From Amphiscolops sp. MND2022 (lineage: Eukaryota), in NCBI GenBank assembly GCA_964187785.1, contig OZ076421.1, forward strand, positions 10,416,001-10,480,000: a DNA stretch of 64,000 nt, given 5' to 3'. Each line of letters starts with the position of its first letter. Positions within the stretch are counted from its first letter, which is position 1. The translations under genes were made by a program, and so were the position numbers. The notes beneath the pieces are model-generated. The model was not told the DNA's origin, made no database searches, and was given only the letters and a program-made list of their open reading frames with translations. Of the stretch, positions 8,891-64,000 are shown piece by piece.

Positions 8891-9073
8891 AAAATAATTT
8901 ATTCCAGTTGGTATAAATGTATTTCACTTTTGTATATCACTATATACACTCAGTATAAATATTTTGCACTTTAGTAAAGTGTTGAAAGAAATTTTCCTTT
9001 TTCGTTTTTTTTTCAAATTCATTTTCAAATTTCATTTTTTCAAATTCCAATGCAGTTGGTATAATTGTAGTAC
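8891..9073 (+). repeat. 183-bp direct repeat, left copy
   Basis: Aligns without gaps to 26494-26676 with 8 mismatches by hand count. Confidence 0.9.
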
Positions 9074-9784
9074 CATAGGATGAATGTAGTACAATCCGCA
9101 ACACGTATATTCTGGTTCCGCATTTTGTCTTGATACAAAATAAGTAATGTTATGATACAAAACTAGTAATGTTCATGTTCGGAAACAACATTCTGTTAAT
9201 CACGATTTGACCCACGATTGGAACCAAAATATAAATTCAATTCCACACTAATGACTTCAATAAATCTTTCATTTTTTTAACAATTTCATTACAATTGGTA
9301 GAAATGTAGTATTTCTCTATTGTATTTCACTATAGTCTAATATTTACAGTTGAAAGTCTAAAGAATACAGTTTTGTCTATTATTGTGGTAACTTGAATAT
9401 GAAATCAGTGAAATATAATTGAAAATCAAAAAAGATATTTCTCAAATCAAAAAAAGTGAAATATATAGATTGCATTTGAAACAAATTCGGTTCCAATCGT
9501 GGGTCGAATCTTGGTGTTTCTATTCCTTAATATATCGTTGAACCTCGGAATATTGTACTGTCTGTCACATTACCGTATCTCTCGTAATTACGTAATCATT
9601 TGTCGTGACCAATGACAAGTTAGTATTCTATGAACGTGAGAAATATACGGAAAAACGAACAGATTACCATGTATTACTTCTCTTAGTTATAGAGGCAAGA
9701 TAAACTGATTGTAAGTCACGTGTAATTTCTGTTTTAAGAAAATGATTTTCACAACCGATTTTCACAACTGATTTTCACAACCAA

Positions 9785-10048
9785 TTGGATAGAAGAACAT
9801 CAAAAAAAGAGATGCAGTGGCGCAGTGATCATTCCATGTGGGCTCTTCCTATCATTGTGAAGCGGAACACAATGTCTTTTGCTCAGTCTATATGGAGGGA
9901 ACACAGAGCAGTCTGCATCGAATCACCAGGGAGTTTATGGGCGGGGATTGAACCGGTGGTAGACAACGTATCAAGCTTCACTACATACCCACAGGCATTA
10001 TCAACTGCGCCACCATCCCCATTATGTCGTTGCATTAGACACATATAA
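9785..10048 (+). CDS. Small unknown protein (likely ATG at 9812, MQWRSDH...APPSPLCRC), paralog of 54845-55117
   Basis: Shares QWR...IESP.S....I.PVVDN..S.TTYP...S.APPSP.CRC with the B copy, with many synonymous third-position changes. Confidence 0.7.
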   Translation: MDRRTSKKEMQWRSDHSMWALPIIVKRNTMSFAQSIWREHRAVCIESPGSLWAGIEPVVDNVSSFTTYPQALSTAPPSPLCRCIRHI

Positions 10049-10117
10049 AAACTTTTGGAAATCTCCGATAAGAAATTGCAGTGAGTGATTTTTGATATGA
10101 CAAGAAACGACTTTTAT

Positions 10118-10140
10118 ATGTATATATATATATATATATG
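10118..10140. repeat. (TA)n microsatellite
   Basis: TATGTATATATATATATATATATG. Confidence 0.9.
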
Positions 10141-10622
10141 ACTGTGTATTATTATCAGATTGCATTCATTTCATCGTTAGTAATGAATTGAAGCATCATA
10201 ACTCAACTCGACCCACGGTTGGAACCAAAATTTTCTATGTTTGAATCTATTTGAATAAAAATATTCGAGGAACCTATTTTTTACCATTGAACTTGTGACG
10301 TTTTGTAAAAATTTGAAGTACGTTTTCTTTTACCGCTAATGATCAAGGGGCTTCCGATGAATTTTTTGGTGTGAATTGTATTGGAAAATTTATTCCATTC
10401 AAATTTTGATTTATGATTACATAGTAATTGAATTCTTCAAACCAAACCTAATTTTTGCGTTACGAAATCTACTTTGGAATGGTTTAAAATTAGATTCAAG
10501 CTTTCGTCAGGATTTTAAAATCAAAATTGTTCCAGTGGAAACTTAGTAACAACATTTTAAACTCTCACGTACACTAAAACCAATGCCACAAAAGTCTAAA
10601 AGTTTGTCATTCCCTTTCAACG

Positions 10623-13337
10623 TCAATTTTCTTCGTCTGAGTCTTCTCCACGATTGTCACTGTTTTCTTTTCTTGGTTCTTGACTACCGCTGCATCGGCT
10701 GCTGGTGTTTCCGGAGCTGCTCCCCGACTGGGCCTCACTGAATTCAGAGCGGGCTACCGGATCTTCATAGTCGAACATTAACTGCTCGAAGGGATGAATT
10801 GTTTTACTTGCTCGGAGGACAACATAACGTTGATTGTTGTCGGCAAATACAGTGACATCAGTGGACTTCATATTGGCTTCTAAAACTGAGTGATTGGCAA
10901 GGCGACCCATACATCTACTATCAGGGTGGACAGGACACGTTTCCGCGGAGGCATTGATTATCCTTCGGCCAGGTCCTTTGACTTCAAGACAAAACTCCCG
11001 TTTAACACCTTCAATGGCGGATACTTCGTCCATTGATGTCTTGAGGAAAACCTGCCCGTGGTAATCAATGACGACTTCATTTTTCTGGAAAACTCGGGTG
11101 GCAACGATTCCTCGTCCAAACTTGCTAAATGAAACTTGCGTGACTCCGGGCCATTTTTGAGATCGACATCTCTCCATAAGCGAAGTTTGATCTTCAAACT
11201 CCATATTGCTTGCCAATCCTTTGTAATAAATCTTCTGAATTGCCTTGTTCGTTTCTACTTTTGGGGTAATAAATATTGGGAGCACAAGTAGATAAACTTT
11301 TCTCAGGTCTTGGTTGCCGTCATTCTGCGTCGTCCACTTCTGTCGATGGAAATAGCTCTTCAGTCTCATTTCCAACGAAGCAAGGTCAGTTTTTCCATTC
11401 ATATGCTTGAAAAAAGCATGGGCACGAGCTGATTGGCGGGCATATCTCTGTCGATCCTGGTGCCTTCTCACCGCCGACTGCACGACCTGGTAGTCCAAGG
11501 CAATGTCCAGAGTCTGCCAAATTGCTCTAGTTTGGACCTTCAACTTAGGGAGTACTGCTTCAGTGTCGTTTGCGATGGGCAACACAACATGAAGGTGCCG
11601 TTCCAATTCCCACAGCGGGCTAGCACAGTGTTTCAGTACCTGTTTAAAACGATACCAACATTAAATTGTGTCTAAATGCATTCTGAATTAATGATATCAA
11701 CAGTGTACGTGTCACAGATAGATCGACCCCCGATTGGTACCAAAAACTAGCAAAACTAGCTCTACAATATAAATTGTCCCAGTTTCCACGGATTTTCAGT
11801 ATAATTTGACTTGCTCAAAGAAAGCAATGCGGAAAGCAAGACCATATCTTTAAACACATGGCGTGGAAACCAGATACAAATCTTAATACATTGCGAACTT
11901 TCACTCAAAGGGGTGTACACATTATTGCGCGTTACCATGAATGTCCTGGATTCCACGGTTTTAAGTTTGAATTGACTTACTCAAAGAATGCATTGCGGAA
12001 AACAAGACCATATCTTTAAACACATGGCGTGGAAACCAAATACAAATCTTAATACATTGCGAACTTTCACTCAAAGGGGTATACACATTATTGTGCGTTG
12101 CCATAAATGTCCTAGTTTGAACGGTTTTTGAGTATAAAACGGCTCGCTTTTAAAAGTCTTCGAGAAAAAAAGACCATATCTTTGAACACGTGGTGAAAAT
12201 CGAATACAAATCCTAACTCATAGTTCTATTCAAAGGGGTATGATGATGATTTGTTTATACATACCGACTCCATATATTGGTCAACAACGTGGCTAGGTCG
12301 GAAGTTGGATTTCCCAGCTGAGTTCACAAAAACCAATTCGGTGTACAGGATCCGATTGTCTGTCTCACTCAGCAGTCTTTCGAAAGGAGTCCCCTCACCG
12401 TGGTCCAGAAATTCGCTTCGAACACTCACGAAGTAGTCCACAAAGCCTTCCAATAACCATCGTGGTATATTGTAGCACGTTTTTCTGGCGCACCTCTCCG
12501 CTACATCTATCTCAAGCACGAAAGAGGCATTTTGGTCGTCTGATTCTTTCATCTGAACTGCTGCCTGCGCCACGGCGTGGACAGTCACATTGCTGACCTC
12601 CCGATCCAGAAAACCCAAGAATATTAAAACGTAAGCCATTAGACTTCGGAAGAACCCTATTTGGACCTTTTTCGTAGCCAGAATTCTCTTACTGCAACGC
12701 GATACATTCTCTGTTATTGTCCATTTAATGAAAGACTCCACTGTATCGGTTTTGTAATCAGGCTTCTTCTTCTTGGCGGGAACAGTCTAAAAAATGGAGA
12801 GTTTTCAAAAAGTGTCTTTATTGTATTTAAAACTGATAACGCATCCTCCAGGAATTAAAAAGTAAATTGGTTTCTATGAAACGTAACCCTTAATTGGAAC
12901 GCAAAATTTGAACAATATGTATTCAGAAGTTTTACTATACTTACCATATCAACTGGTGGGGGCATTGGACGTTTGTTTGCTACATTATCGGAGCTTGGAT
13001 GTCCATTGGACGGTTTTGGAGGAATTATGATCTCAGCTGGTAATTCGCTCTGATTGTTTAAAAACTCGTTTATGACCTCTTCAGCTTCAGTCGGGAGATG
13101 TTCCGTTATTATTCCATCCTCATTGAAGCTGAATTCAGGTGGCTCTTGGAGGCGGAACGGAGTGCTGTTGAGTGGCCCGCCGGGTGTTTGGCTAAACATC
13201 ACGGGCGATACCAGGGGCGTGAACAAACCAGAAGGAGTTTGCATTTGGGTTAATGTCAGAGGCGTAGACATGTCCGCGGAAGACGGTGTTGGAATTGGGG
13301 GCATCGACAAAGGCAGCGAGGTTTTATTTTGTTCCAT
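10623..13337 (-). CDS. Intact 3-exon gene (exons 13337-12945, 12786-12265, 11639-10623; about 643 aa): Pro/Ser/Thr-rich N-terminus, degenerate tyrosine-recombinase-like core, C-terminal SETD8/PR-Set7-like SET domain
   Basis: GT-AG phase-0 junctions join three open frames. SET motifs GRGIVAT, VIDYHG, GRLANHS and EQLMFDY are present. The YR-like segment is AYVLIFLGFLDREVSNVTVHAVAQA...VFVNSAGK, without the catalytic R or the downstream HxxR/H/Y. Confidence 0.85.
11725..12215 (+). repeat. 166-bp tandem array 1 (about 3 units) headed by motif A, inside intron 2 of the SET gene
   Basis: Unit TTCCACGGTTTTAAGTTTGAATTGACTTACTCAAAGAATGCAATGCGGAAAACAAGACCATATC... repeats with a 166-bp period. Confidence 0.9.
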
Positions 13338-13635
13338 TTAGTAAAGTTAGATTTTCTATTTTGACGGTCTGATTTTCAGAGACGATTTCAAGATAATGAT
13401 TGTAGATTTCGAATATTTGTTGATATGAATTACGATAATATCTGATATTTAGTAATTAGTAGTGCCATATCCGGCTGTGCAACCGAAAACCTCAATCTTA
13501 AATGAGGCATGTAAAAAGCGTTATTTCGGAATGAGGCTAGTGTCTTCATTTCCAATTATTCCTAATAGTGCACCTGCTTCGTAATTAGGTGACGATTAGC
13601 TGTAATTAATTTGGGATGCAACCAATCTCGTTAGC

Positions 13636-13955
13636 GTCTTCTTTAACGCTCATCCCATCAACATTCATCACTTAAAAGGTCTACATATTCTATTAGTTTC
13701 GAGCTTTAAAATAAAGTCTTCTTTAACGCTCATCCCATCAACATTCACCACATAAGGGGTTTACACATTCTATTAGTTTCGAGCTTTAAAATAAAGTCTT
13801 CTTTAACGCTCATCCCATCAATATTCACCACATAAGGGGTCTACATGTTTTATTAGTTTCGAGCTTTCAAATAAAGTCTTCTTTAACGCTCATCCCATCA
13901 ACATTCACCACATAAGGTGTCTACACATTCTATTAGTTTCGAGCTTTAAAATAAA
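13636..13955 (+). repeat. 4 x 80-bp tandem repeat in the divergent promoter between the YR-SET and Tudor-like genes
   Basis: GTCTTCTTTAACGCTCATCCCATC starts at 13636, 13716, 13796 and 13876; the array ends at the ATG at 13957. Confidence 0.95.
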
Positions 13956-13956
13956 A

Positions 13957-15194
13957 ATGCTTCTCCAAACCTTCTATGAAAATGAAGTTGTGCAAATCTT
14001 GGATCCTGCGACATCAATTTGGGAATCAGCGAAAATAATTTCCTTTGTGAGCGATTGGTGTGTAAGAATTAAATGGGTCGATTGGTCTTACAATAAAAAA
14101 GAAGATATCACTGTTCCCGAAGTATACAGACCTGACAAAAATTACTGGAATTTTAGAAAATCCCACAATCTTGTCCGCGAAGAAACTGTGAGCAACAAAA
14201 GACGGTCAACACCTCTTAGCTACAACGCTCGTCGACTGGTCAGAAACGATCAAATTTACTTTTGGCAACCAGAATGTAACTGTGTAGATAGCGAAAGATG
14301 CCAAGAGGACCGTTGCTGCGGGTCAGTTGTGATGGGTTGGGTAAAAATTAATGACCCTTTCTGTCAACAATGTTTGATAACCGACGTGGAGGACAATGAT
14401 GAGTATGTTTCGTATCGCCAACTAAGAAATAAACCTTGTGTAAGAGACACTGAACCAGAAATTGATGAAACTGAACAAGATCATGAATCAGGATCTGACG
14501 TACATCGCCCATTCGTCAAGAAGCAAGCCCGTGTGACAAGCGCCACCCAACCGATGCCACAAGTCGACATTCTTTCCTTGCTTCCCAGTGTTGACGATGT
14601 CGTTGAATTAACATATGCACCCTGTGAAAATGATATCATAAAGGTAATGTTTTCTTGCTTTTTTGCTTACAAACTTTGCTTTTGAATTTTGATAACCCTG
14701 GATTGGCACCAAATTTTTCAAAGTATTTTTCCCACCAAATATTTGTTCAATCTTTTTATTTTCAGGTGGGATCTATTGCATCTTACGCAAATGATGATTT
14801 TGAAATCAAGAAGATTTAATATGATCATCAGAAGAGAAAAGCATGTGCATTCATGCAGAGCAGAAGTGACCCTGACATTGAAGTGCGCATCCCGACAATT
14901 CGTGTTGTCACAACAACATCTTCTAAAGGCGATGTAATGGATTTTAATTCGCTTCTGGAGCCCATGGACCAAGTCTATGCTTTGTTTTCTGCAATAAAAC
15001 GAATGGTGGGACTCTCAAGAAAGAAGCATTCCTTAACTGCAACATTAGTTCCCTGTACCCCACTGACAAAAAACTCTGTGGCTTCGAAACTGGCAATCTC
15101 AAAGAGGCCGTTAAGTATAGTTTTGCAAACCAAGAGGGACATAAATGGTGCAACGGTACATGGGATACTGTACTTGGAAGAAATTGGGATATGA
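13957..15194 (+). CDS. Tandem Tudor/Agenet-like (royal family) protein; exons 13957-14643 and 14766-15194, premature TAA at 14817
   Basis: FYENEVVQILDPATSIWESAKIISFVSDWCVRIKWVDW fits a Tudor-like beta barrel with aromatic residues. A second barrel-like unit is VMGWVKINDPF...YVSYRQL. A phase-0 GT-AG intron joins the exons. Confidence 0.5.
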
Positions 15195-15574
15195 TCCCAT
15201 GTCACGCAAGCGATGGAGAAGATGTTCTTATCAAGACAATGAGGTTCATTGAACATCAAGAATTTGGCATGTTCACGATTCGTGTCCAGTTTTTGTCAAG
15301 CCAAGGCCACTACAAAAACAGCCAATATAGAGATCTGAGTCGAAATGTACCTGTCTCAGATGCATGAAATACTCTTAAATACTCCTGAATTTTAAAAAAA
15401 CTTTCTATTCGTGTTTGATCATTTTTTGTTTGTTCAACAATTTATCTTTCATCATTATTAGTAATTATTACAATATAAGCTCCATGACCTTGTATTCTTG
15501 AAAATTCTTGAGAAAAGTCTTAGACTATCGAATTACTTTATTCTGAAATGTAATGCACTTGTCACATATAGATC

Positions 15575-16085
15575 AACCCCTGATTGGTACCAAAAATGAT
15601 ACAATCTCAACAATATCCGGGATTTTATTTGCATGTTTTCCAACTTTTTTCAGGAAATTTGATTTGCATCAAAAAGCAATGCGGAAAACAAGGACACATC
15701 CTAAAAAACATGGCATGAAATCCAAACACAAATCGTAATGCATTGCTCAATTCTGTTCGTCTCGGTTTCCACGGATTTTCAGTAAAATTTGACTTGCTCG
15801 AAGAATGCAATGCGGAAATCAAGACCATATCTTTAAACACATGCCGTGGAAACCAAATACAAATCTTAATACATTGCGAACTTTCACTCAAAGGGGTATG
15901 TATGTATGCAGACACCGGATTGCGCATTACCATAAATGTCCTGGTTTCCACGGTATTTAAGTGAAAATTGACTTGCTCAAAGAAAGCAAGGCGGAAAACA
16001 AGGACATATCTTTAAACGCATGGCGTGGAAACCAAACACAAGTCCTAATACGTTGCTCAATTTCATTCGAAGGGGCGTAGTCATG
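15575..16085 (+). repeat. 166-bp tandem array 2 (degenerate units) headed by motif A
   Basis: Same unit as 11784-12215, preceded by AACCCCTGATTGGTACCAAAA. Confidence 0.85.
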
Positions 16086-16478
16086 GTTTTCAGAAAATAA
16101 TCAAACAATTTTTGTTTTTCTTTTTTTATTACCTTTTGAGTATTTCCAATCAGATAACACTTTACCAAGATGAAACAAACAGTCCTGAGAAGTGAAAACT
16201 TCTAATTACGAGTGATAAGACTTAATGGAAGACTCTTTTGCATCTGATTGAGATTATTGACAAAATGGCCTTGGGTGATATGGACTCAAATTATTAAAGT
16301 ATAATTGAACCGTAATTCATCAGTTTAATGAAGAGACTCAAAACCGGACTCATTTCACTTGTGGGTTTGTGTATCTAATTGCATTTCATTTTATTGTATG
16401 GTAAGGGTTGCAGTCTGACAAATGTTCTACAATCTATACAATTTCACTTTGCAATAAACCTAAAAACCAGCTTTAGAA

Positions 16479-19400
16479 ATGACTCCACTGTCAATGTGGG
16501 AAAGAAATATTATCGAAGCGGAAAATGGGAAATTCTTCGCTAACTGTCGACTTTTTGACGATATATCCGGAAAAGAAATACCGAATAAGTTTCGGAAGTT
16601 CGAGACACTTGTTGGGGAAATGTTGACTGGGACAAATTTAAATTCAAAAGAATTCATTCGAAGAATTGCTGTTAAAGGCCAGAAAACTCCCCCTGTAGTT
16701 GTAGCAGCAAAATTGGCAAAACTACTTGTACTGCGTGGATTTAAAGACTTCCCTTGGAACTCAGCCAGAAGAGAGTTTGTCAGTTTGTTTTTCAATAATG
16801 ATGTCATACCATATCACAATCTTTACATGAAAGACACCCTTGTGACACCTGCAGATGCGACTCCTGAAGATTCGGCCCCTGAAGGTCAAGTCAGTGACAA
16901 TTCTCTCTCAAAAGAAAGAAAGCTAGAAATATCAGACGCCAAAAAAGTCAAACATGAACAAACTGATCCAATTAGAACAGATCTGATGTCAGAAGTTGGG
17001 TTCAACAGTTTCATGAAAAAAATCAAAAGCTCTGCAAATAAGAGAAAAGATCAACGATTCACAAAAAAGAGGACCCAAACTTAGTCAAAAAAATTGTAGA
17101 TCTTTTCGAAAAAAGAGAATCTACTGATGAGTTCAGGCACCATTTATCTCTTGTTACGAAAACGGGTAACACGGAAGATGTTATAAAAGTTATTCGAACA
17201 AGACTTTCAATTGTTGGACTCGGATACAATTTAGTCCCATGCATTCGATTGGTCAAGAAGTCAACATCCGAAATTCAGTCCTACTTTACAGCAATGTGTG
17301 AGCCAGAAAGAACCTTTTCTGGTTTTCGCTGCAACCTGATAAAATGCGTGGAGACGGTGTCATACTTCTTGTTTGGAACGAAAGAACTCAATGGCCAACG
17401 AGTTGATATCTGGGGAGATGGTTGTGAAATTGGAGGTGTCGAAACAACACGAATTGCATTCCGGATCCTTACTGACAAAATGAAGTGTCAATCATCCGAT
17501 GCAGTATTCTGTTTTGCTGCATACAGGGGTAAAGATAGTAGATCCGCAATGGAGCAAAACCTTGGACCAACTATAGCTGGAGTTCAAGAGTCTGGTTGGC
17601 TTTTTATGAAGACCCTGGAACTATCAAAACGCGGAGTTAATTTAACATACAGTGGCGATTCGCCGTTTTTAATGAGATTGGTGCTCGGAATCACAAATGA
17701 ATCAGCTAGCCCATCGAAAATGCCACTCTATATAACAGAACTTGATTACACACCAACAAAATGTCATCATGAAACTGGTCTACGATCTGATGTTATTATA
17801 CCCTTCAGAACGGATCTTCCAAAATCTTCCTTGGTCTTCTACGAAAATATACAATCAGTTTGTCCTGATGCCACGCATATGACCACCCTGTGTTGAAAAT
17901 GACCTCCAAAGAATTGCACAGAAAATTATCAGAGAAAAGCATCCTAATCATGATGTAGCAATTCGCCAGCTTGAAGAAAACTTGACAAGAAGAGATGCGA
18001 AGAGACCATACTTTCAGTTCAACATATCTCATAGAAGTGGTTCGTGTATCGGTACTGTAGGTGCAGTATCCCTCTCAGGTGGTAGTGCTCTAGCGGTCAT
18101 TGCTGATAAAGAGGAGCTTGCAGGTGCAAAAGACGGTAAAATTAGCGATCTTTACCATGGTGTTTGGGGTCCCGAAGATATCATTGTTGGCAGTGAAGAA
18201 AACGCAAATGTCCCTTGCGTTAACATCCTAGGAAACTGGTTTCCTAAACTTTTCAATAAAGATAACCCCAAGCAAAAAGAGTCCAATGACAAATTCATAT
18301 CTGCTTTTGATGCTTGCGAACTCCTGCGATCGAGTTTAAACCAATGTGTTTTATGTCTGCGAGCAGAAGAATTCAACAGTGAAACGTTCAAAAAATGGGC
18401 TGAAGTTTATTACCAAACCAATATCTTGATATTCGGGCATGCCGGTTTGACACCTTATAAATTGAAAATGCTGATGTTTCCTCAATTTGTTGAGAGTGGA
18501 TATATAAAAAGACCATTTGATCATTTGTGTGAAGGTCTTGAAAAATCGAACCACCAAGCTAATCGTGGCTTTCAGACAAAGACAATGCGCGGAGGAGGTA
18601 AGATCTATCACAAGGATCCACTATTCCTCGAGTCGTCCTTTTCTTTCTTGAAATTTTTAAGATTCGCAGTTGAAGTTGAAGACAAAGGGTCGGACGCTGA
18701 ACCAACTTCTAAGATTATCATGGAACCTGAACAAGACGCAACAACAGAGGTCTACTTTGATGACCATAATATGACTGGAAACAGAAAGATCTATCAGACA
18801 GTTTCGAACAGTACCACAAACAGCGTAATGAGTATACTTCATAGTGCAACAAAAGTGATGGACATTGACGTTCCGGGACCTGAGTACCTTGATATTTGCC
18901 GCATAGAACCACCGTTAACAACTATCGCCATTGGATGTCAAGAAAATCCTTTAAGTGGATTAAGATTTTGTCTGCTTGGTCGCTTGGGTACTTGGAAAAA
19001 ACATACTCTAACACATGACATGGTGAAACAATTGATCATCAATATGGGAGGAACTGTTCTAGAAAATGAACAAGCTGACGTGTTGATGAGCACCCATTCA
19101 CAGCTCCCCAATTGTTTTGTTCTCGTCAAGGACGAAAAAGACTGAATCTTAGGTACCGGTTCCACAGAGGAAATTAATGACATGAAGAAACCAAGGAAAA
19201 GAGGGTCATCAGCAACACGGGAGGGTGGAAATGAACCATCACAATATTCCAAAATAGCAAAACCATTCGCAGCTGGGGGTTTCAAATTCTTGAATATCGA
19301 ATTTTTATCTGAAGTTGACGAGAAAAAAATGCTGATTGACCCGGAGCCATACATTCTTCAGCCCGGATCCAAACTTGTTGAAAATCGTGTCAACGACAAA

Positions 19401-19511
19401 AGACCTTTGTTCTTGGACCAATGCAGTGGAAAAACACTGGGTGAAGGTGTATCTGCGATTGTCGCTCTCAAGAGATACCGTGATGGCACTTTTAAACAAC
19501 TTTCGTTTTGA
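16479..19511 (+). pseudogene. Transib/RAG1-like DDE transposase with C-terminal BRCT domain (frameshifts near 17075 and 17890, stop at 19143)
   Basis: Motifs in order: DIWGDGC (D1), SGDSPFL (D2), CPDATHM (DxxH, compare RAG1 IDALH), LTPYKLK, CEGLEKSNH (E, compare RAG1 SEGNESGNK). BRCT: LSGLRFCLLG...VKQLIINMGGTV. Paralog at 59368-62815. Confidence 0.8.
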
Positions 19512-19714
19512 TTTACTGTTCTCTTCTAATTCATATGTTACCCGAACTTGAAACTATTCAATAAATTCTTCAAAAATAAGTATTTTCATTAGGTTTATTG
19601 TGATGCTCCTACGAAACTAGTTTTACATATCAATGATTGGTGTCAAAAAGCACACAATTTTGGGCTCCGTTTCGGCAAACTTTCGTTTGTCTTGGTTTCC
19701 ACAAATTGAATGCG

Positions 19715-20072
19715 CATTACCACAAATGTCCTAGTTTCCACGGTTTCAAGTTTGAATTGACTTACTCAAAGAATGCAATGCGGAAAACAAGACCATATCT
19801 TTAAACACATGGCGTGGAAACCAAATACAAATCTTAATACATTGCGAACTTTCACTCAAAGGGGTATACACATCATTGCGCGTTACCATGAATGTCCTAG
19901 TTTCCACAGTTTTAAGTTTGAATTGACTTACTCAAAGAATGCAATGCGGAAAACAAGACCATATCTTTAAACACACGGCGTGGAAACCAAATACAAATCT
20001 TAATACATTGCGAACTTTCACTCAAAGGGGTATACACATTATTGCGCGTTACCATAAATGTCCTTGTTTCCA
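19715..20072 (+). repeat. 166-bp tandem array 3
   Basis: GTTTCCA starts at 19734 and 19900 (period 166). Confidence 0.9.
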
Positions 20073-26400: not shown

Positions 26401-26493
26401 ATTTTTATTTTTATTTATCTAAGCAGCTTTACGATTCGACCCACGATTGGAACCAAAATCCCCCGAATTCCACGAAGATTTTAAAATTTCATT

Positions 26494-53051: not shown

Positions 53052-54044
53052 ATAAAATGGTACGTCTGCATTCAAAAGAACTTTCACCTTCAAAGTAATC
53101 GTTGTCCAAAATCTGCATTTAACTAATCCTTTTATTAATTTCTTCTTTCATTTTGTATGTTCTAGAATTGCCAAGTCATCCAATGGTTCCCCACCCGTTG
53201 ACACTCGCTCGCAGATTTGTTAGGACTGCATGTTATTGTTTCAGAAAGGAGCCTTTCAGAAAAAAATTCGTTACCCGCTATTTCGAAGTCAGGCGTTGGC
53301 TGGAGGCTGATTTCATGAATTACAGAGACGTCATTGCAGTTGCTCCGTCAGCGCATAACTTCCACTGTACCAAATAAAGATAAATAGACTTAGTTTACTT
53401 TTTCGAAGATAATTGTCTTTTTTCACCAGTTACAAAAATGCAAAGTACTATTTCATTAGTATTTTTCAATTGAAATAAAATTGCAAACCATTTTTACATG
53501 AGATTTTCAAACGTAGGTTCATATCAGTTCTATTGTTGTGAAGGCAGTCCTATTGCTGTGAAGAATCTACAAAATATAAACGAACAAATTTGGTTTCAAT
53601 TCGTAGACCACAACCTTCATTTTTCACTCTCGCAGGATTTATCATCCAATTACAGACTCTTCACTCCATGTATAGTAATTAGTCTCTTGGTTCTACTGCG
53701 CAATTCGACGTAAAATTTGAAATCAATTCGGTATACCCATTATACAGATTTATCTTTATTTTCATCCAGTGGTGTCCATTTAGGAACTTTTTCCTTCCTA
53801 ACACCCCCCTCAACCACACACACTTTGTGAAAGAATCTAGTCTTCTCGGTCTACTAGATTTCGTTTGAAAAGGCAAACAAGTCAATAATGAGTAACTATC
53901 AATATGTGTCAAAAATAATCAACATTCACAAACAACTGTTTTGGACATTTAGTATAACAAGAGACAGCACGACCCTGCTATGTAGACTTTTCAAGGTTTC
54001 TTTATCAGTTATTTAGTAGTTTACTATCATTTTGATATAAAAAA

Positions 54045-54624: not shown

Positions 54625-54905
54625 TATCAAAAAGGGATGCAGTGGCGGATTGAACCTTCAATTGGGCCTCCCTATCGTTTGTGAAAGGGAACGAAGTCTC
54701 TTGAAAAAGGGATGCAGAGAACCTCAAATTGGGCTTCCTAACGTTTGTGAAAGGGAATGAATTCTCTTGAAAAAGGGTTGCAGAAAACCTTCAGTTTGGT
54801 TTTCCTATTGTTCGTGAAAGGAATCGAATTCTCATCAAAAAGGGATGCACTCTCGTTGTTCGACTCATCAAAAAGGGACGCAGTGGCGGATTGAACCTTC
54901 AATTG
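54625..54905 (+). repeat. Tandem copies (about 4, ~65-75 bp) of the 5-prime end of the small-peptide gene
   Basis: AAAAGGGATGCAG...AACCT(T)CAA.TTGG...TGTGAAAGG repeated. Confidence 0.85.
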
Positions 54906-55117
54906 GCATTTTTATTGTTGTGAAGCTTAATCAGACCGATCATGATGTCTTTATCGAGTCGCCTAACAGTGTCTATGTGAGAATCGATCCAGTGGTAGAC
55001 AACTCATATAGCATCACCACATACCCACGTGAAATCTCAAATGCACCACCATCCCCAAGATGCCGTTGTGTTGTACACAAAAAAAACTCACACAAACTTA
55101 ATCTTTCGTTTCGCTGA
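54845..55117 (+). CDS. Small unknown protein, paralog of 9785-10048
   Basis: QWRIEPSIG...IESPNSVYVRIDPVVDNSYSITTYPREISNAPPSPRCRC. Confidence 0.65.
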   Translation: MHSRCSTHQKGTQWRIEPSIGIFIVVKLNQTDHDVFIESPNSVYVRIDPVVDNSYSITTYPREISNAPPSPRCRCVVHKKNSHKLNLSFR

Positions 55118-56309
55118 TCGTTCACTTGCATATTATTTTTAGTTTGTTCTTAGTAATGATTGATTTTTGACAACCTCTTTACTCAAAGAATAAATTTTCA
55201 TTGAGTGATGGCTTTCCGAAATTGAGAAATTAACTTTATTACATGATTTGGAGAAACTAGATATCAAAGTTTAAATACTGCGAATCATTTTTAGTATTGA
55301 ACTGATTTTGAACAATTTTTGAAACCTATTTTATGAATTTTGCGGTAAATTTCATGGAGTGTCACTATTTTACGCGCCGTGAAATAACTACCATTTTAAT
55401 TCACAAAAGATGTGAGTGTATTTGATGACTCATCATCAGGGTTGTTCAAAAGATATTTGATGCCAAACATTATTCTCCAATTAACTGTATTACACTCAAC
55501 CAATTTTCAAAACAGAAACAACCCCTCTCATTTTTTTAACAACTCCGGGAGCAATTGTTTAGGGATAAGAAGCTTGTTTTTCAATTACAGGTTAATGCAA
55601 TTTTAGGTTCTCATTATCTCTCGTTCTCGGTACTTTCGTATTCGAGAATTCAAATAATCAATAAACCAAACCATTTAGTACGAAGTTTACAAACGTAGGT
55701 TCATAGCAGTCCTATTGTTGTGGAGAATCCACGAAAATAAACGAACAAGTTCATTTCAATTTCGTGGTCCACTACCTTCTATTTTCACTCCCGCATGTTT
55801 AATCATCCAATTATAGATTCTTCACACCAAGTATAGTAATTAGTCTCTCAATTCTACTGCGTAATTCACAATGTAATTTGAAATCAACCCATTGTACAAA
55901 TCTAATACAATCAAGGGGTGCCAAAAAATAATTGAAAATAATCACCTTCTTAACGTCAACTTTTTAAATGCGATCGGTGAATTTGAACTCAGTTTTGACT
56001 CAAATAACTTTTGATACACTCTGAATGTAATTTGAAAATTAGTTAAACGTTTCTAATAAATGCAGTGTCATGGCAGTTTAAATTGCGTCAAAAAATGAGT
56101 TCAATTTTTTTCCAATTGATTTAACAACTATAAGTACACAATTCAAAATCATTGCTTTCATCACCTAGACCAATTACTCTCGCAATAACCAGCAGTTCAA
56201 ACAATTCAAAACAAATTCTTCATTATTCTAGACCGATTACTCTCGCAGCAGCTCAATTTTCAAACTTTTTACTTTCCCCGTTGATTTCTGACTAAACCAA
56301 AACTTCATA

Positions 56310-58720
56310 ATGTCGGAACCTCTGAGAAACATCTCAATTGGTGATTGCGACTTCACGCAATATACTCAGTCCAGTCCTTATCTAACCCTTTTACAACCTG
56401 CACAAACACCTAATGAATTTCACTTTAATAGCACTCCTGCGTCGATTCATCGAAGTTACTTCTCATTTCACGAGTCCTATATGGGCACTACGATCCCTTG
56501 TCCGCCCAACGTTTCTCAAATATTGGCAACAAGCGAAAGCACCCCCCGTATATTACTCAAAGCAGCACATCAAATTCTACACAACCGGGCGATTAAGCCC
56601 AAAAAAACCAAAACGAATCGAGTGCACTTTCTACAAGCACCTCCTTAGAGCGCAGCCTCGACTTTCCTGCTAAGACGTGCCAATTGCCCCAACTGACAAA
56701 GTCAATACCAAAATTGCCCCAACTGCAGTTGTCGGAGAAAGTCGAACCCGAAATTGAAAAGACATTAGAGGGGGTTTTAGAAACGTACGACAAATGTGGA
56801 GCGCTGACGTACCAGCAACAATTAACCCTTTTTCACGGCATTGTCACGTACCTAAACATGTATGCCGAGCCAGTGGCAGTGATGACAAAGAGCATTTTGG
56901 CTGTGGCAGGGCATGCTGTCACCCAAGGTATGATACATTTTGATGACTTGAGCGGGAATGACAATTGCAGATTGATTCTCGAACCATCTTTGGGTAAATA
57001 TACTGGACCTTTTTTTTAAAACATGAAGACGACATAGGATGTTCTGTGTAAAGTTAAAGATTTTTAGCGTATGGTACGAAGAGGTTTTTTTCAATTTGAT
57101 AATTTCAACCAGATAAAATCATGCGGACGTATAAAGTGTTGAAATGAGAATATAAATTAAAACATAAGACAACAAATTAAATGACTAAATCTAGAACTAT
57201 AAAATGAGATCGTTTCAGGAAACACTATTCGAGTAAAACACCGTGTCGAACGATGGATGGTGAACGCGATGCGGGTGTATCACTTTAATGTGAGCCCTAC
57301 TTTCCAACGGAAATCACCAAGAACTGTGACGAGAACATTTCAACGGGAAGAAGGTGGCGTCGAAGAGGTTGCTACGGAGCATTCCTTTGTAACTTCGAAA
57401 AGGAATGCGAACTTCAACCCCAGAACTATTGCTGAGGAGTTCGTGGACAAGGTAAAAACTGAACCATTAGGAGCACAGAGAGCTTTGGGAGTCTAAAGTA
57501 GTAAAATTTGTTGTTTCAAGTAACGGGTGCACAATTATTTTGAAGTATAATTTCCGTTCTCTCATGTAACAACCCTTTTGTCAGATTATCATCGCACCAT
57601 TCAAATTTTGCCGCAGTTGTGTTGCTTTAAAATTGCGTACTCACTCTGTAGATGGAAGAGAAGGCCAGGGAGACAGTGGATGATATACTGCTGGGGTATG
57701 TCCACGAAGCACTTCCTCTGCCTACATCTAGCAACGCCCGATTCAAGAAGAAAACGCAAGCCATCGCTGAGATCTGAGCCCCTGTTGACAAGGCCGGTGC
57801 TGCAATACACAGTATCACTCAGCGATAGCTGGGTCCTTACGTTGTCAGACGCCTCAATGCGCAGCGAGTTGCCCGCCAAGTGCTGTGAGCCAAAGAATTC
57901 CTTGCGTTTTGTGGCAGCAAACGCAAACACACGGTACCCACCAGGCAGCGACTCATAGAATTTTACGTCAAGAACTCATGGAGCACTGAAGAAGACCTGA
58001 AAAAGGTATCTTTTTGACCAGCAGCATTCGACAGATTGACTTCTTTCTTCAGTAAAGCAACGGTTACATTGCATGAGAAGGAATATCAGTTACACTGCAC
58101 AAAAAAATTACCAGCAATAAAATAGCTAAAGCCAAGTAAACAAAAGAATAACTAATTATCAGTTTCATGCTGTTGTTATAAATTTAGACGTTCAAGTTTG
58201 TCACAGATCGATTGAATCTAGAGGCACTACAGACTCCAACAGTTTCCTTTCGCCACGATGTCTTATTCCTGGCAGCTCATAACGAACAAACAGATACCTT
58301 CAAGAGGACGCTTGACAGACGAATTAAGTCACAGCAATGGCCATCAATCTGTGACGTTCACGTGAAAGGCTTGGGTCGAAAGATCCTAATCGAATATAAC
58401 GGAGAAGAGATCCAAGGAATGAGCAGCGAAGACAATCTCGAGATACCCGGAAACCAAGTCGAGTATCTCTTCCAAATTCCGCAAAAACACCTAATCGACG
58501 CCTCCAAGGAAATCTGCGACGAACATCCGATCAACCGGTGCCTTGAGAGATTAATTAATCACAAGTCGTCCAAGGAAGCAAATGTGAAACCGGTGCTAGT
58601 AAACATAGCACAGAACAAAGACGTCCTGGTCATGGTAGCTTAGACTGACATTGCGGCATTCCAGGAACTTCGCTTCACTTATGGAGACGAAGAAGAGGGG
58701 AGTTTTTCAATTGAAAGATT
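56310..58720 (+). pseudogene. YR-like core + SET gene, paralog of 10623-13337 (exons about 56310-56993, 57219-57451, 57652-58005, 58198-end), with stops and a deletion
   Basis: HAVTQG vs HAVAQA; TEHSFVTS..NFNP vs TELVFVNS..NFRP; QRVARQ vs QRYARQ; SQQWP vs SQKWP; CDEHPINRCLERLINHK vs CPVHPDSRCMGRLANHS; FQELRFTYGD. Confidence 0.85.
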
Positions 58721-59367: not shown

Positions 59368-62300
59368 TTATCGTCTGGTTGTCCTTCCTCTCTTGCTCTT
59401 TTTCTTGAATTTTTCAATGAAGTAAATCAATGATCTGTAATCAATGTCTGATATTCCGGGATTTATTTGTCTCTCAGATAATTGACGTTGGCCTTTGACA
59501 CAAGCTCGCTCAATCGCACCATCAGCAAACAAGTATTCGGAAGGGTCCAAAACACAGCCCTTTTTCGCAAAATCTTGATTGTATGCTATACTCAAAAACT
59601 TGAAATCGGTGAGGAAAAACTCTGTTTGATCCTTGTTTTGTTGCTTTTTTCAATATTTTCGTTGGAGCTGCTTTTCGTTGAGTGTTCGATGAACATGTGT
59701 CGCTGTCTGATCCGGAAGCTGAGTTTTTTTCACTCTGCGTTGCATTGAGCAATTCAATGTCATTTTTCAATAAAGTAAATTAATTTATGTTGATGAATGA
59801 CGCTCTGATAGTCCAAGAGCTTTGTCTTTACTCAACACTTCCCCCCCAAACGAGTAATTGTATCTTCCAAAGCTTCTCCAGTCGTTCCAGTAAAGTGACC
59901 AACCACGTGAAATAGAAGTCCACTCAGCAGCCTACTTGAATCTCGAGTGGCAGCTGTTTCTATTATTGGATGCTTGCATACATTTTTGCATTTTTCGGAA
60001 TAAGTTGTTGTCGGCTTGAATTGTTTCTTAAGCAAGTCAAATCTATCGCTCACTGGTATTCTTTGGTGTTTTGAAATTATGTCGATTTATTGGCAGTAGG
60101 AAAAGAAACCTTCAAAGAATAAGGGATCAGCGTTGTACAATTTTCCTCCGCCTGTTATTGTTTTGGGTTGGAAGTCCTTGTGAGCATGATGGTTCGACTT
60201 TTCCATCGCTTCACACATGTGTTGCCATGGACTCCGAACAAACTCTGTGTCCATTATCTGTGGGATTAGCAATATTTTCAATTTGTAGGGGGTGGGTCCG
60301 ATTTTCCCGGAAAAAAGACCAACGATGATTGATAATATGACTCAGACCAAAACTTAAATTGCTCCGTGTTTAGACCGTGTTTGGATGCCCACAAAATGAT
60401 AGTTCATTTATTCAAATTATGCTGCAAAAGATTTGCACAGTCGTTTGTTGTCAATATGTCTGATTTTGCATGTGTGGGTGCATGGGTTTCAAAACTGAAA
60501 AGGCATTGCTGACAGCACGCGCATTTTCTTTGTTTGTGTTGTCTCTCTTCTCAAAAAGGATTTGTTTTCCAAACACATTTCCAAAAAGGTTCGGAACTTC
60601 TAGCTCAATTTTTTTTATCAACGATAGCTACTAGCGCTGATGTTCCGGTTAGCCATACCGGTCAAACGGTTCCTTTTTTCAAATCAGATCCTTTCACTTG
60701 CAGGTCAAATTGAATTTTCGGTTTTTTTCAACGCCCTTCGAGTACAGTTTTCTTCCAATTGCTGTAGGGGCACTTTGCACACTTGTTTTTCGTTCACAAT
60801 TTTCTGTGCAGCTTGGTGGAGATCACTCTGAGCGCACCTTGGGATCATATGCGTTACAACTGGCATGACACATCTTATAATCTCAAGGTACACAAGTGAG
60901 TTTCGTGGGATTTTTTTCTGAACAGAGCTTTGAGATTCTGACGCATACAAGTATATTCATCCACATCTGTGGGTGGGAAGATACTTTTCAGATCCCACAT
61001 ACAGCGACAAGTCTGAAGGGTACAGGTTTGATGCATCGCTGTCTTGTCTATCACCGCATCGCCAATATGAGACAGTACAGAAAACGATTGTCGCCGGAAT
61101 AGGTGACCACCGCCCCTTGTGTACTCAACTCTTTTGTTTCCTTGTACAGCCACCCCGTCTCTTGTTTTCCAGCTATCTCTGGTCCCAAATTTCGCTCCAG
61201 TACGAATCTGCTGTCTTTGCCTCGGAATGTTTAGTATATCATAACAAAATTTACATTTGATGTTTCGATTGACGTTTGACACCTCTTAGTTTACCTTTGG
61301 TAAATAGATAGTATTAGATTTGGTATAGTGGACTGATTTCGAATTACACGGTCAATTACACAGTCGAATCACTATACATGGTGTGAAGAATTTATAAATG
61401 GATGGTTAAACATGCGACAGTGCAAATTGAAGGTAGTGGTCCACGAATTTAAACTGAACTTGTTTGTTTATTTTTGTGGAATCTGCACAGTAATAAAACT
61501 ACTTTACTGAGCGGCAATTAGAAATTACAGAACCGAACCAGTAAAAATAACCACTGAGACAAAAAATTTTATACTTGATGATTGCGCTGTCATTTTATCA
61601 GAGAAGTCTTGCAAAATTCTGAAACACAACCTTGTGTGATCAACGCCACCAATTTCACAACCATCACCCCACAAATCCATTTTCAGTTCAGATGTTTTAG
61701 CTCTCTCGTAACGAATCCACGCAACAAATTTGACACATGACACCAGATCACGACGGATTCCAGAATAGGTGGTTTCAGGCTTACACACCGAGATAAAGCT
61801 TTCCATGATCTGACTCTGGTATCTCTGGACTGCACGGTATGATGGTACGAGACTTTGGAAGTTTTCTAATTTATTGATTTTGAAGTTCGAGGATAGAGTG
61901 AATAGTAAGTCTTCTCGCGACTGAAAGTTAGGGAAGACTTTTTATTGACAGATTTAAGTGCTCTGGCTGTTTTGTTCTGGAAAAGTGAAGGATGACGTCT
62001 ATAAGAGCGTCGAAGTCGACGTTGTTTTTTTGCATGACGCAAAACGAAATTCCAATATGTTATTGGAGGGTTTTGTATTCTAACTACTCTTTTCCCTCGC
62101 GGAACTACGTAAGTCGTAGACTGATTGTTTCCGGCCTTTGGGGCAATTGTCTGCATTGTGAAACGATTGTTCACGGGTTCTAGTGACTCATCGGTTCCAG
62201 TTTGTGTACCAATTATTCTGTGTACCTCTTGCGGTGTTGGTTTGACCACTTGGTTTCCAGTGGGAAACAGATTTAGGCCTATCAATTTAGTTGTGATTTC

Positions 62301-62815
62301 CTTTCGAGCGTTTGTCCTTGGTATGTTTTTCCCACACTCAACAAAACTAGTTTCATCATCTGTGCCTGACAAAAAACTTTACTTTAAAAAAGGTATGCTC
62401 CCCGAGTCGTTACGCTGTTAGTTTATAAATGTTCTACAAATATGCATGCTCCTGGAGTTGTGATGGTTCTGGTACAGAAAAGCTGTATAGAACGTTTGTA
62501 TTTTCCAGGGGTTGTCAACGATTACTAGAGAAGCTGAAATAGGTTGTTAAAATGTTACTACAGAAGTTGAAATTGAAAGTGTTGAGTCTAAAATCTTACC
62601 TCGATGTAAATTGTGTGTCTTGTCTGGCCGTTTGTTTTCCAATTGATGACGAAATCGTCAGCTTTCAATGATGTTCCACAAATGACGTGATTCGTTAATT
62701 TTGCAGTTTCTCGATATTTGTTATTCTCATTGACTCCAGAAATTTGATCGATTAGGTTATAATCAATGTACTAAATACTGTTCATGAAAATAGAATTCTC
62801 TTTCCAGATTTCCAT
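59368..62815 (-). pseudogene. Transib/RAG1-like transposase + BRCT, paralog of 16479-19511, intron-containing and frameshifted
   Basis: LIDQISG..NKYR; MDLWGDGCEIGG; GKDSR...NLGPEIAG.QETGWL; TYSGDNRFL; PVVTHM; PYKLK; CEAMEKSNH; BRCT LLSGLLFHVVGHF...ITRLGGK; LDPSEYL. Confidence 0.85.
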
Positions 62816-63277
62816 TGTTGATGAGTGGATTGAAATGCAATGCATGTTTTGTGAAGATTTAAAATGGGACTGAGGTGTTTGGGCAAAAATTGAGTTCCAC
62901 ACTCTCTTTAAAGTAACAATACGATTCCAAACGAAAAAAGGAAATGAGCCCTAAATGGGACTCGTCGCGGGTTGTTATTTACACTTGTTGCATATGTGGC
63001 ACTTTAAACGCAAATTGAGACTCGATTTCTCACCTGTTAATTTTTGTTCAACTCCATGTCATTTCTGCCAATTTGAATTTTGTTCAACTCTAAGCAAACC
63101 TAATCTATTTGACTACAAAATACCCAGTATTTATAGCAAAAAGCTAATTCGAAATGTTGTCAAAGCATTTTAAACTTAAAGAAGCTGTTGATGCTATCGA
63201 CAAATGCTACATGCGGAGGCAGGCAGAAATAATTGAATTCATCGGGTAGTGGGAAGTAGTTTTTCGATGGAGAAAAT

Positions 63278-64000
63278 TTGGAAAGGAAAAATCAAAAATA
63301 CAAATCAATAGCACTGCGAGAAAAACATCGGAGAAGTGGAATGTTAGAAAGACGAAAGTTACCTTCAAGACACTTTCCCAGAAAAGAAGGCGAGAAAACA
63401 AATTTTTGCTTGACTATCAGCCCAAATTCCAATCCCGTGGTGATAGAGTCGAATTCATTCAGGAACGTGACATCAAACAAGGATTTGTTTTCATTAGGGA
63501 CACGGTACTGAGTGAAATGAAGATATTTGAAGAAGACGAGTATAGAGAATGACAAGACATGGGAAAAATGGAAGAACTGACTACCACGTTCAGAACTCTG
63601 ACAGTGAAGTACGACGACCTGCGGAGTTTAGCAGCTCAAGTGTTCCATGAAACAAACGAGATCCAGTGCGATGATAGCTTCGATGAGAATAACGAAACTG
63701 ACAATAATCAGCCGTCGACAACAAAAAAGCAACAGAAACGCGCAGTTTCCTCAAAAAGAAAGAACCGGTCGCTATGATGACGATGATTCCCGTAAGTGTA
63801 CAAAATATTGTAATATCTATGCGAGATAAAAAATGTAGCAATAAGCATAAACTTGCTCAACAAGCATGAAAGAAACTTTGTTCAAAAGCATGAAAAATGT
63901 TTGTTGTGTTAAGTAGAGTAATTGTTTTCATTTGCTGTAGAAAACTACCGACGAAGTTCCCCTCATCTATTTCCCATGTGCGAATGGGATATTGCATGAA
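63278..64000 (+). pseudogene. Start of an unidentified multi-exon gene divergent from transposase B
   Basis: Coding-like frames 63278-63777, donor GTAAGT near 63792 and acceptor TTGCTGTAG near 63939. No recognisable domain. Confidence 0.35.

Follow-up and report, generated by a model that had tools for sequence, protein, structure and literature searches.

A very large terminal-inverted-repeat element in Amphiscolops sp. with a predicted RAG1-fold transposase and a predicted histone-methylation gene module

The present study concerns 64,000 nucleotides from Amphiscolops sp. MND2022 (GenBank assembly GCA_964187785.1, contig OZ076421.1, positions 10,416,001 to 10,480,000 of the forward strand), hereafter the window, in which we analyzed two related mobile-element copies, element A toward the left end and the decayed copy B toward the right. 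The window appears eukaryotic, having ~38% G+C and lacking long prokaryote-style gene arrays, and it contains a 200-N gap at 7784-7983. An earlier note on this DNA had proposed that the same four genes, encoding a DDE transposase with a BRCT domain, a zinc-finger (ZnF) JmjC protein, a tyrosine-recombinase-like (YR-like) SET protein, and a small peptide, occur twice, at 9-26 kb and at 47-63 kb, in giant transposon-like cassettes that carry their own chromatin machinery. Comparison of 8-27 kb with 45-64 kb by tblastx revealed two inverted, collinear blocks of protein-level similarity, one pairing 16.5-19.4 kb with 62.8-59.5 kb (summed E 5e-71) and the other 21.3-23.8 kb with 52.0-49.4 kb (summed E 4e-29), and a third block containing the SET domain (10.7-11.2 kb with 58.3-58.7 kb) emerged when protein queries were used. 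For these three gene types, transposase-BRCT, ZnF-JmjC, and SET, the similarity is far above chance, and the repetition therefore stands; the small peptide does not, being a conserved non-coding segment, and the true fourth gene encodes a Tudor-like protein. Unlike that segment, the protein genes of A and B share no nucleotide similarity, and the 41% identity of their transposases marks the two as copies in different subfamilies, not duplicates of each other. Thus, the original observation is real and its central interpretation right, after corrections to the boundaries, the fourth gene, copy B, and the YR-like assignment.

Element A was delimited by comparison with other A-type copies. Five such copies were compared, from ENA assembly ERZ25074608 (ctg177212, ctg181808, ctg185812, ctg184759), and their sequence pieces are labelled L001-L006, L008, and L015. 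The ends and the four genes of the element, all of which lie inside its terminal inverted repeats (TIRs), are as follows.

8558-27136: element A, 18,579 bp, bounded by 22-bp TIRs
8558-8579, plus strand: left TIR, CATTACAGTGCATCTGCAAGCT; homology with L004 and L005 ends exactly here, and the flanks are unrelated
10623-13337, minus strand: SET gene, with a SET-domain exon from 10623 to ~11681, a middle exon at 12226-12741, and an uncertain first exon at 12855-13337
13957-15322, plus strand: Tudor-like gene, the fourth conserved gene, missed by the earlier reading
16479-19511, plus strand: transposase gene, intronless, ~1010 amino acids (aa), with a predicted RAG1/Transib-fold DDE core and a BRCT domain
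20330-24295, minus strand: ZnF-JmjC gene, at least six exons, with the HxD exon at 21721-22113 and the exon of the third metal ligand at 21031-21459
27115-27136, minus strand: right TIR, the complement of the left TIR with one mismatch

Collinear with the window, the A-type copies all lose homology at the same two points, beyond which the sequences are unrelated: three left flanks and five right flanks are all different, and the right end of A recurs with different flanks in L002, L006, L008, and L015. A 20-mer of the TIR is found at only these two sites in the window, where 0 chance matches are expected, and once per end in the other A-type copies. The tips, CATTACWGTGCA, are of the 5'-CA...TG-3' form; CATTAC...GTAATG tips are present in the window and at four of five other ends, one copy having mutated to CG/GG, and a homologous tip, CATTACAGTGCACAGGCAAGC, terminates the element in subfamily L009, whose transposase is 54% identical. 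Four TIR matches in JGI metagenome contigs were all dismissed as chance matches without further homology. The family is large: the A-type transposase cluster (90% identity) comprises 128 sequences spread over many contigs of 0.1-0.8 Mb, two other transposase subfamily clusters have 93 and 21 members, 179 representative proteins of a 50%-identity library match the transposase at E<=1e-3, and the SET open reading frame (ORF) of A has 20 relatives, from close to distant, all on public-assembly contigs. The genome is likely to hold more than 100 copies. With the same ends, unrelated flanks, and many copies, element A is mobile and has been active recently; it is 98.6-99.1% identical to two other copies and is itself a young copy, the transposase of which carries three private inactivating lesions. 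The cassette seen earlier at 9-26 kb is thus a real element with a wider true span, 8558-27136, and the proposal of a very large (at least 17 kb) cut-and-paste transposon holds for size, with 18.6 kb between the TIRs, while cut-and-paste movement is suggested by the predicted DDE fold together with the TIRs.

Three lesions break the transposase gene of the window copy: 1 nt is deleted at 17062, 2 nt are deleted at 17888, and a stop codon lies at 19143-19145. The sole lesion of the ctg177212 transposase is a private 1-nt deletion at 16688 and that of the ctg181808 transposase a private 1-nt deletion at 19275; since each young copy carries different private lesions, their common source encoded an intact, intronless protein of ~1010 aa. 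L001/L002 contain an intact 896-aa transposase ORF, and L015 a 939-aa ORF that begins at the same ATG; elsewhere, the relatives consist of one ORF each, 990-1300 aa long. An AlphaFold2 model built from 150 family sequences has a mean predicted local distance difference test (pLDDT) score of 84.5 and a predicted template-modelling (TM) score, pTM, of 0.83. When this model was compared with the PDB by Foldseek, the top 47 matches were all RAG1, HzTransib (the Helicoverpa Transib), or BbRAGL (the amphioxus RAG-like protein), with a best E of 1.8e-6, a probability of 1.0, ~650 aligned columns, and target-normalised TM scores of ~0.4-0.53, and the next match after this group was Hermes (hAT) at E 3e-3. 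The model thus indicates a RAG1-type catalytic core fold, consisting of an RNase-H DDE domain with a large helical insertion. Residues D195, D199, D279, and E571 are invariant in the family; in the model, D195 and D199 lie on the first long strand, D279 falls just past the strand 273-278, and E571 starts the helix 571-587, a placement that suggests D199 (or D195), D279, and E571 as the likely catalytic residues. After the RAG1-like core comes a BRCT region, residues ~705-870: among 36 family members, Pfam BRCT_2 was matched in 19 (best 1.6e-6) and BRCT in 7 (best 1.2e-7), a family hidden Markov model (HMM) gave weak matches to the Lig4 and Rap1 BRCTs in the PDB, and the modelled secondary structure of residues 713-790 fits the BRCT beta-alpha-beta-beta-alpha-beta-alpha topology. 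Profile matches and model together point to a C-terminal BRCT domain.

The SET-domain exon matches Pfam SET at 1.5e-10, above the cut-off, and its best PDB match is SETD8/KMT5A (2.6e-5, 26 bits), followed by MLL at 7e-3, in keeping with the SETD8 type named earlier. In the SETD8 alignment the sequences RLANHS and FDYED are present, corresponding to the NHS and (F/Y)DY catalytic motifs. The product is probably a SETD8/KMT5A-like lysine methyltransferase, for which H4K20 would be the substrate by analogy. Both upstream ORFs of the gene are conserved in all copies. No Pfam family was matched at E<=0.1 outside the SET domain of exon 3 or of the L007 homologue. A tyrosine-recombinase relation of the N-terminal exons found no support in sequence searches, as neither 12229-12741 nor 12858-13337 matched Pfam at E<=0.1 or any PDB sequence, and the YR-like label is to that extent unsupported.

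In a PDB sequence search the HxD exon of the JmjC gene matched PHF8 at 1.2e-11, then KDM7, PHF2, and KDM2A, which agrees with the KDM2/KDM7 type first suggested. Aligned to C. elegans KDM7A, the A-lineage protein keeps the HQD residues and has Tyr at the third metal ligand, the position of the second His; subfamily L010 retains this His (NWIHCV), as does the fossil copy B. The same His-to-Tyr change at the third ligand is found in PHF2 and in Schizosaccharomyces pombe Epe1. The zinc finger is N-terminal: a C2HC-like finger is visible in the ORF at 24062-24295 of A and a C2H2 finger in the L010 homologue. Whereas host PHF8/KDM7 proteins join a PHD finger to the JmjC domain, the element proteins have a C2H2/C2HC finger in its place.

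The Tudor-like protein is ~424 aa long in the intronless relative P0248, and in the A lineage its gene has a ~110-nt intron after 14665. No homologue was found other than next to these transposases, and it has no Pfam match and no PDB sequence match. AlphaFold predicts two N-terminal beta-barrels (pLDDT 72-90), the structural matches of which are tandem Tudor, Agenet, and SAWADEE readers: AGDP3, SETDB1, ADCP1 with H3K9me2, and FMRP, and also the BAHCC1 tandem Tudor domain (TTD) with H4K20me1, UHRF1, and the Spt5 KOW domain. We regard the protein, with moderate confidence, as Tudor-like and a probable methyl-lysine reader.

The cargo genes behave as parts of the element. Between A-type copies, the ratio of nonsynonymous to synonymous substitution rates (dN/dS) is 0.28-0.30 for the transposase, 0.30-0.32 for the Tudor-like gene, 0.21-0.30 for the two 3' SET exons, and 0.24-0.27 for the JmjC core exon, vs 0.66-1.19 for five non-coding control stretches; as decay after insertion inflates these values, the true constraint is stronger. 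All four genes are therefore under purifying selection, the JmjC gene in its core exon and the SET gene in its two 3' exons. Constraint is weaker in the Tyr-bearing JmjC exon (21031-21459, minus strand; 0.55-0.60), the JmjC exons other than the core have values of 0.5-0.65, and the 5'-most SET ORF (12855-13337), at ~1, could be non-coding or disordered. Real spliceosomal introns are present in the SET, JmjC, and Tudor-like genes of the A lineage. Identities of the A proteins to those of three other subfamilies are listed below.

Transposase: L009 54%, L010 36%, L007 27%
SET: L009 48%, L010 32%, L007 30%
Tudor-like: L009 50%, L010 36%, L007 not found
JmjC: L009 absent, L010 28-44%, L007 not found

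On these values the cargo genes diverge in step with the transposase. The SET gene adjoins the transposase even in relatives with 27% transposase identity, two unrelated samples (Logan ERR15087781 and ENA ERZ21818094) show the two genes head-to-head, and all four genes are kept in lineages of 36% transposase identity. The co-occurrence expected of a cargo-bearing element is thus borne out in diverged subfamilies, and so, with the cargo lying inside the TIRs, under purifying selection and diverging with the transposase, is the claim that the element carries its own chromatin machinery. The gene set is shared but its order is not, being SET (minus), Tudor-like (plus), transposase (plus), JmjC (minus) in A; Tudor-like (minus), SET (plus), transposase (plus) in L009; and, in the direction of the transposase, Tudor-like (minus), transposase (plus), SET (minus), JmjC (minus) in L010 and B.

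The cassette placed at 47-63 kb does contain copies of the genes, although copy B spans 49.4-63.5 kb, is decayed, and continues past the window end. Its recognizable parts are as follows.

49450-52044, plus strand: ZnF-JmjC pseudogene, matched to A and L010 by tblastx/tblastn; frame broken, His of HxD lost
56729-58694, plus strand: SET pseudogene, 32% identical to the A SET; in-frame stop and 11-aa deletion
59515-62821, minus strand: transposase-BRCT pseudogene, 41% identical to A; at least six in-frame stops
63154-63528, plus strand: first exon of a Tudor-like pseudogene, 40% identical to the L010 Tudor ORF; one in-frame stop

Relative to L010, the SET pseudogene has three further stops; the transposase pseudogene is interrupted by an interspersed repeat at ~61250-61560, and the Tudor-like gene is cut by the window end. 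Copy B and subfamily L010, in which the transposase ORF (992 aa) is intact, are collinear across the four genes; no transposase in databases is more than 44% identical to that of B. These features mark B as an old, decayed, pseudogenised member of another subfamily. The introns that A and B had been thought to share are, in B, largely decay (stops, an insertion, and broken frames). No convincing inverted repeat and no A-like tip was found in 45-64 kb, and B runs on past the window. A putative miniature inverted-repeat transposable element with A-like tips at 61479-61495 was rejected as an unrelated interspersed repeat whose homology runs beyond the supposed tip. As a separate observation, an interspersed repeat of ~170 bp occurs in copy B at 53572-53708, 55705-55872, and 61336-61503, with fragments near 46700 and 50880; one copy lies inside the B transposase, and the repeat is absent from element A.

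Among known systems, Transib, RAG1, and RAGL (ProtoRAG) have the same predicted overall fold as the element transposase over ~650 aligned positions and are its sole significant structural matches. The systems differ in several respects. Transib/RAG ends carry a CACWGTG heptamer at the tip, whereas the element TIR has a heptamer-like ACWGTG 4 nt inside the tip; Transib/RAG insertions have 5-bp target-site duplications (TSDs), the element none of this length; and phmmer, HMM, and Pfam comparisons detect no sequence similarity of the element transposase to RAG1 or Transib. Unlike RAG1/RAGL systems, the element transposase has a C-terminal BRCT domain and no RAG2-like partner. Element A is also, relative to the usual length of a Transib, about four to five times longer. 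Transib belongs with EnSpm/CACTA, Mirage, Chapaev, Plavaka, ESTA, and Lanisha to the CMCT clade; EnSpm, Mirage, Chapaev, Transib, and RAG1 have C(2)C and H(3-4)H motifs in common (PMC12730594). Element A shares the 5'-CA...TG-3' termini of CMCT elements, but their hallmark motifs are not conserved in its transposase. The nearest published parallel is ESTA, a fungal group that has a TA TSD and TET/JBP cargo and in which only HHpred reveals the similarity to RAG1 (PMC12730594): the similarity to RAG1 visible only in profiles or structures and the epigenetic-modifier cargo are common to both, a TA TSD as in ESTA may or may not be present in the element, and the ESTA cargo is DNA-directed and that of the element would be histone-directed. 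TET/JBP genes are carried by fungal DNA transposons, such transposon-borne modifiers have been read as anti-silencing, and SET histone methyltransferase genes are cited for HarbingerS and Phytophthora MuDR (PMC12730594). According to that citing sentence, the SET gene of HarbingerS and MuDR lies inside the TIRs, as here, but these elements are of unrelated superfamilies (PIF/Harbinger and Mutator) and would carry a single modifier, in contrast to the combination of SET, JmjC, Tudor-like, and BRCT described here. The host chromatin proteins nearest the cargo are KMT5A/SETD8, PHF8/KDM7/PHF2, and the tandem-Tudor readers 53BP1, UHRF1, BAHCC1, and SETDB1, from which the cargo differs in lying inside a mobile element, in being multi-copy, and in being highly divergent (26-48 bits to solved proteins). 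In the full-text literature searched, which does not take in Repbase Reports or most subscription journals, no RAG1/Transib-like element was found to be described as carrying BRCT, SET, JmjC, or Tudor genes. We read the family as a new lineage of RAG1/Transib/CMC type, deeply divergent and marked by a conserved chromatin module. It is a variant not seen before among RAG1-fold DNA transposons and may form a deep lineage of its own.

Collectively, our analyses make it probable that both cassettes belong to one family of very large TIR DNA transposons in which a transposase is combined with a histone-methylation module. In the mechanism that we propose, the transposase would bind the TIRs, cut, and re-insert the element by means of its RNase-H DDE core, and the BRCT domain would couple transposition to phospho-dependent factors of DNA damage and repair. 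The SET, JmjC, and Tudor-like proteins would form an element-encoded module that respectively writes, removes or masks, and reads lysine methylation, probably, by analogy with the closest characterised relatives, at H4K20/H3K9-type marks. Such a module could act on the chromatin of the element itself or at break and target sites, with the effect that the element stays expressible (anti-silencing) and that repair and integration are steered. Judged by analogy, anti-silencing or control of its own chromatin appears the most likely role, and steering of repair or of target choice a compatible alternative.

A number of results weigh against this explanation. At the level of sequence, no RAG1/Transib relationship was detected when phmmer and a 36-sequence HMM were run against all PDB chains, and no Pfam transposase or RAG1 family was matched at E<=1 by any of 36 family members, which leaves the earlier assignment to the Transib/RAG1 type valid by fold but not by sequence. 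No C-x2-C or H-x3-4-H column pair, as required for the C(2)C and H(3-4)H motifs, exists in the family, in which the conserved Cys and His residues are C345 and C347 (45-68%), H352, H568, and H578. A fully intact copy was not found among the five A-type copies examined. No empty site, no excision footprint, and no non-autonomous derivative came to light; ctg177212 had been considered as an allele of the window that might supply an empty site, but it is a separate insertion with an unrelated right flank. In the cargo, the A-lineage JmjC protein may not demethylate, given the Tyr at its third ligand, and the right arm of L009, complete at 5.3 kb, lacks the JmjC gene, which is also undetected on the 10-kb L007 contig. 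The Tudor-like model as a whole has a pLDDT of 50.6, and its Foldseek matches have low TM scores and E values of 1e-4 to 1e-2.

The target site also counts among these difficulties. Alignment of flanks had been proposed as a way to define termini, TIRs, and TSDs, and the shared termini and TIRs were indeed found, but a scan of the three copies with both flanks, at all boundary offsets and for lengths of 2-10 bp, revealed neither the 5-bp duplication of Transib/RAG-type elements nor any direct repeat of 3-10 bp. The sole pattern that fits all three complete copies is a TA dinucleotide, which requires the ends to be drawn as CAGTG...CACTG; with CA...TG tips, a TSD is missing in two of the three, whereas TSDs of 2-5 bp belong to the CMCT definition. 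The TA reading implies a near-fixed CAT|TA|ATG context and is therefore more simply explained as part of the TIR. The sequences are compatible with two possibilities, integration with a TA duplication, as in fungal ESTA, or with none.

The absence of a clear TSD, the position of copies among other repeats, and the internal left-arm duplication of L005 might also be expected of a multi-copy host gene cluster, or of an endogenised virus-like element, spread by segmental duplication. We consider this very improbable: the boundaries match an inverted-repeat pair to the base in every copy and the flanks are unrelated, the predicted fold is that of a DDE transposase, more than 100 transposase copies are dispersed in several diverged subfamilies, and no capsid, polymerase, or packaging gene occurs in any ORF scanned. 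A less remote alternative, though still an improbable one, is that the cargo consists of host SET, JmjC, and Tudor genes captured in the manner of Pack-MULEs and now decaying as passive passengers of no benefit to the element. The JmjC gene absent from L009 and undetected in L007, the lost metal ligand and relaxed non-core exons (dN/dS 0.5-1.0) of the A-lineage JmjC gene, and the variable gene order between subfamilies are what this would predict. However, the SET gene, the Tudor-like gene, and the JmjC core have dN/dS values as low as that of the transposase, SET stays linked to the transposase in different samples where transposase identity is as low as 27%, lineages at 36% identity keep the full set of four genes, and Tudor-like homologues have been found only in this context.

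A third possibility bears on the role of the module, not its existence: it may serve DNA repair or target choice instead of anti-silencing, by mimicking a 53BP1-type response at double-strand breaks; the element would in that case govern the repair of its donor gap and of its insertion, or its landing site. KMT5A writes H4K20me1, PHF8 removes it, and 53BP1 joins a tandem Tudor domain to BRCT domains. The BRCT domain is fused to the transposase across the family, the closest relatives of the SET and JmjC proteins are KMT5A and PHF8/KDM7, and the Tudor matches include the BAHCC1 TTD with H4K20me1, all of which would suit such a role. Nevertheless, the argument is one of analogy, substrate specificity being unreadable from a 26-bit SET match and weak Tudor scores, and we regard it as possible but rather unlikely; moreover, it is compatible with the transposon explanation preferred here and does not exclude it. 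A more far-reaching form of the latter, which we put forward tentatively and as less likely than not, is that the family represents an undescribed superfamily-level RAG1-fold lineage, the ancestral state of which would be a transposase-BRCT fusion in permanent partnership with a methylation writer, an eraser-like protein, and a tandem-Tudor reader; its elements would set methylation, probably at H4K20/H3K9, at their own copies or breaks.

If this is true, then a self-contained chromatin and repair module would play a RAG2-like role for a RAG1-fold transposase. The PHD finger of RAG2 ties RAG1 to H3K4me3, and the present family would offer a further, independent case in which a RAG1-type enzyme is joined to partners that read chromatin. 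On its predicted fold, the transposase is a deep relative of RAG1/Transib, invisible at the level of sequence, and it widens the known diversity of the fold behind V(D)J recombination. Transposons with a single epigenetic modifier are already known, VANC in VANDAL being another example, and the novelty is one of degree, in that a whole predicted set of writer, eraser-like protein, and reader travels with the transposase. The linkage of the module, kept through divergence to ~30% identity, makes the family a natural system for studying the manipulation of histone methylation by a mobile element. In addition, multi-intron elements of 18 kb are bound to be taken, wrongly, for families of host SET, JmjC, and Tudor genes in genome annotation.

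The remaining features of element A are non-coding.

9785-10060 (A) and 54840-55120 (B), no strand assigned: conserved non-coding segment, the earlier small-peptide ORFs at 9785-10048 and 54845-55117
9209-26458: 21-bp motif GACCCNNGRTTGGAACCAAAA, 12 matches in element A vs 0 expected, 11 of the 12 on the plus strand
11769-12216 (SET intron), ~15650-16075, 19711-20072, and 22224-22703, no strand assigned: 166-bp tandem arrays, intronic or intergenic
13636-13955, no strand assigned: four tandem 80-bp units between the divergent SET and Tudor-like genes (Tandem Repeats Finder, 92% matches, score 556)

The conserved segment is ~190-270 bp long, with a nucleotide identity of 77-80% when A is compared with B. 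It has indels of lengths not divisible by three, and in L004 and L005 it is inverted and without an ORF, so that the small-peptide gene has to be abandoned. Weak internal inverted arms lie at 9817-9842 and 9988-10013, and the segment may act in cis or represent a small inverted-repeat element; derivation from a tRNA-derived short interspersed nuclear element, considered on account of A/B-box-like strings, was rejected when ARAGORN and Rfam found nothing. The motif GACCCNNGRTTGGAACCAAAA, which contains a CCAAT-box complement, lies at 9209, 9485 (minus strand), 10210, 11725, 15575, 20946, 21062, 23302, 23357, 23413, 26178, and 26438 and nowhere in the window outside element A. Its strand bias is independent of gene orientation, and its positions are conserved in other A-type copies. 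The flanks of those copies lack it, as do L010 and L007. A protein of the element may bind it. The 166-bp arrays occur also in JmjC introns, and the unit recurs in L009 at 2622-2881, 6046-6101, 8592-8858, 14115-14170, and 16727-16957.

Several observations concern the surroundings and left arm of individual copies. The ctg185812 copy is embedded in a 27-28 bp satellite, which occupies both its flanks (L004 13265-14700 and L006 1-4523). The satellite unit contains ATGCACTGTATGG, which nearly matches the 13 outermost nt of the TIR (ATGCACTGTAAGG); either the TIR gave rise to the satellite, or the element may have a preference for sequence of this kind, and both are possible. Use of this satellite as a proxy for an empty site was rejected, the array being too irregular at the junction. 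Two independent contigs, ctg177212 (L001/L002) and ctg181808 (L015), both end, at position 1 of these pieces, at exactly one and the same internal point of the element, equivalent to window position 10357, which adjoins the hypervariable left arm of the element (window 8.9-10.2 kb). This arm is also the site of the inverted conserved segment and, in L005, of a 1.7-kb tandem duplication. The shared contig end at 10357 is probably an assembly break in a repeat-rich, rearranging region. The flanks of other copies (L015 17729-18475, L008 19703-20483, L010 2236-6432, and L003 1-2110) hold other mobile elements, among them a Mutator-like (MULE) transposase, a PEG10-like gag gene, and full Ty3/gypsy pol genes, indicating that copies of the element tend to lie in repeat-rich DNA.

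Between the two copies in the window, a G+C-rich block (27137-46500; 44-49% vs 38%) starts exactly at the right end of A. It contains minus-strand remnants of a retrotransposon of Ty3/gypsy type, with an integrase at 39688-40116 and an RNase H at 41162-41431, for which no pair of long terminal repeats was found in 27137-46500, and several ORFs of unassigned family, for example that at 27315-28301. At 45429-46080, on the boundary of this block and the region of copy B, lies a 218-nt direct repeat with 92% identity and a spacing of 434 nt.

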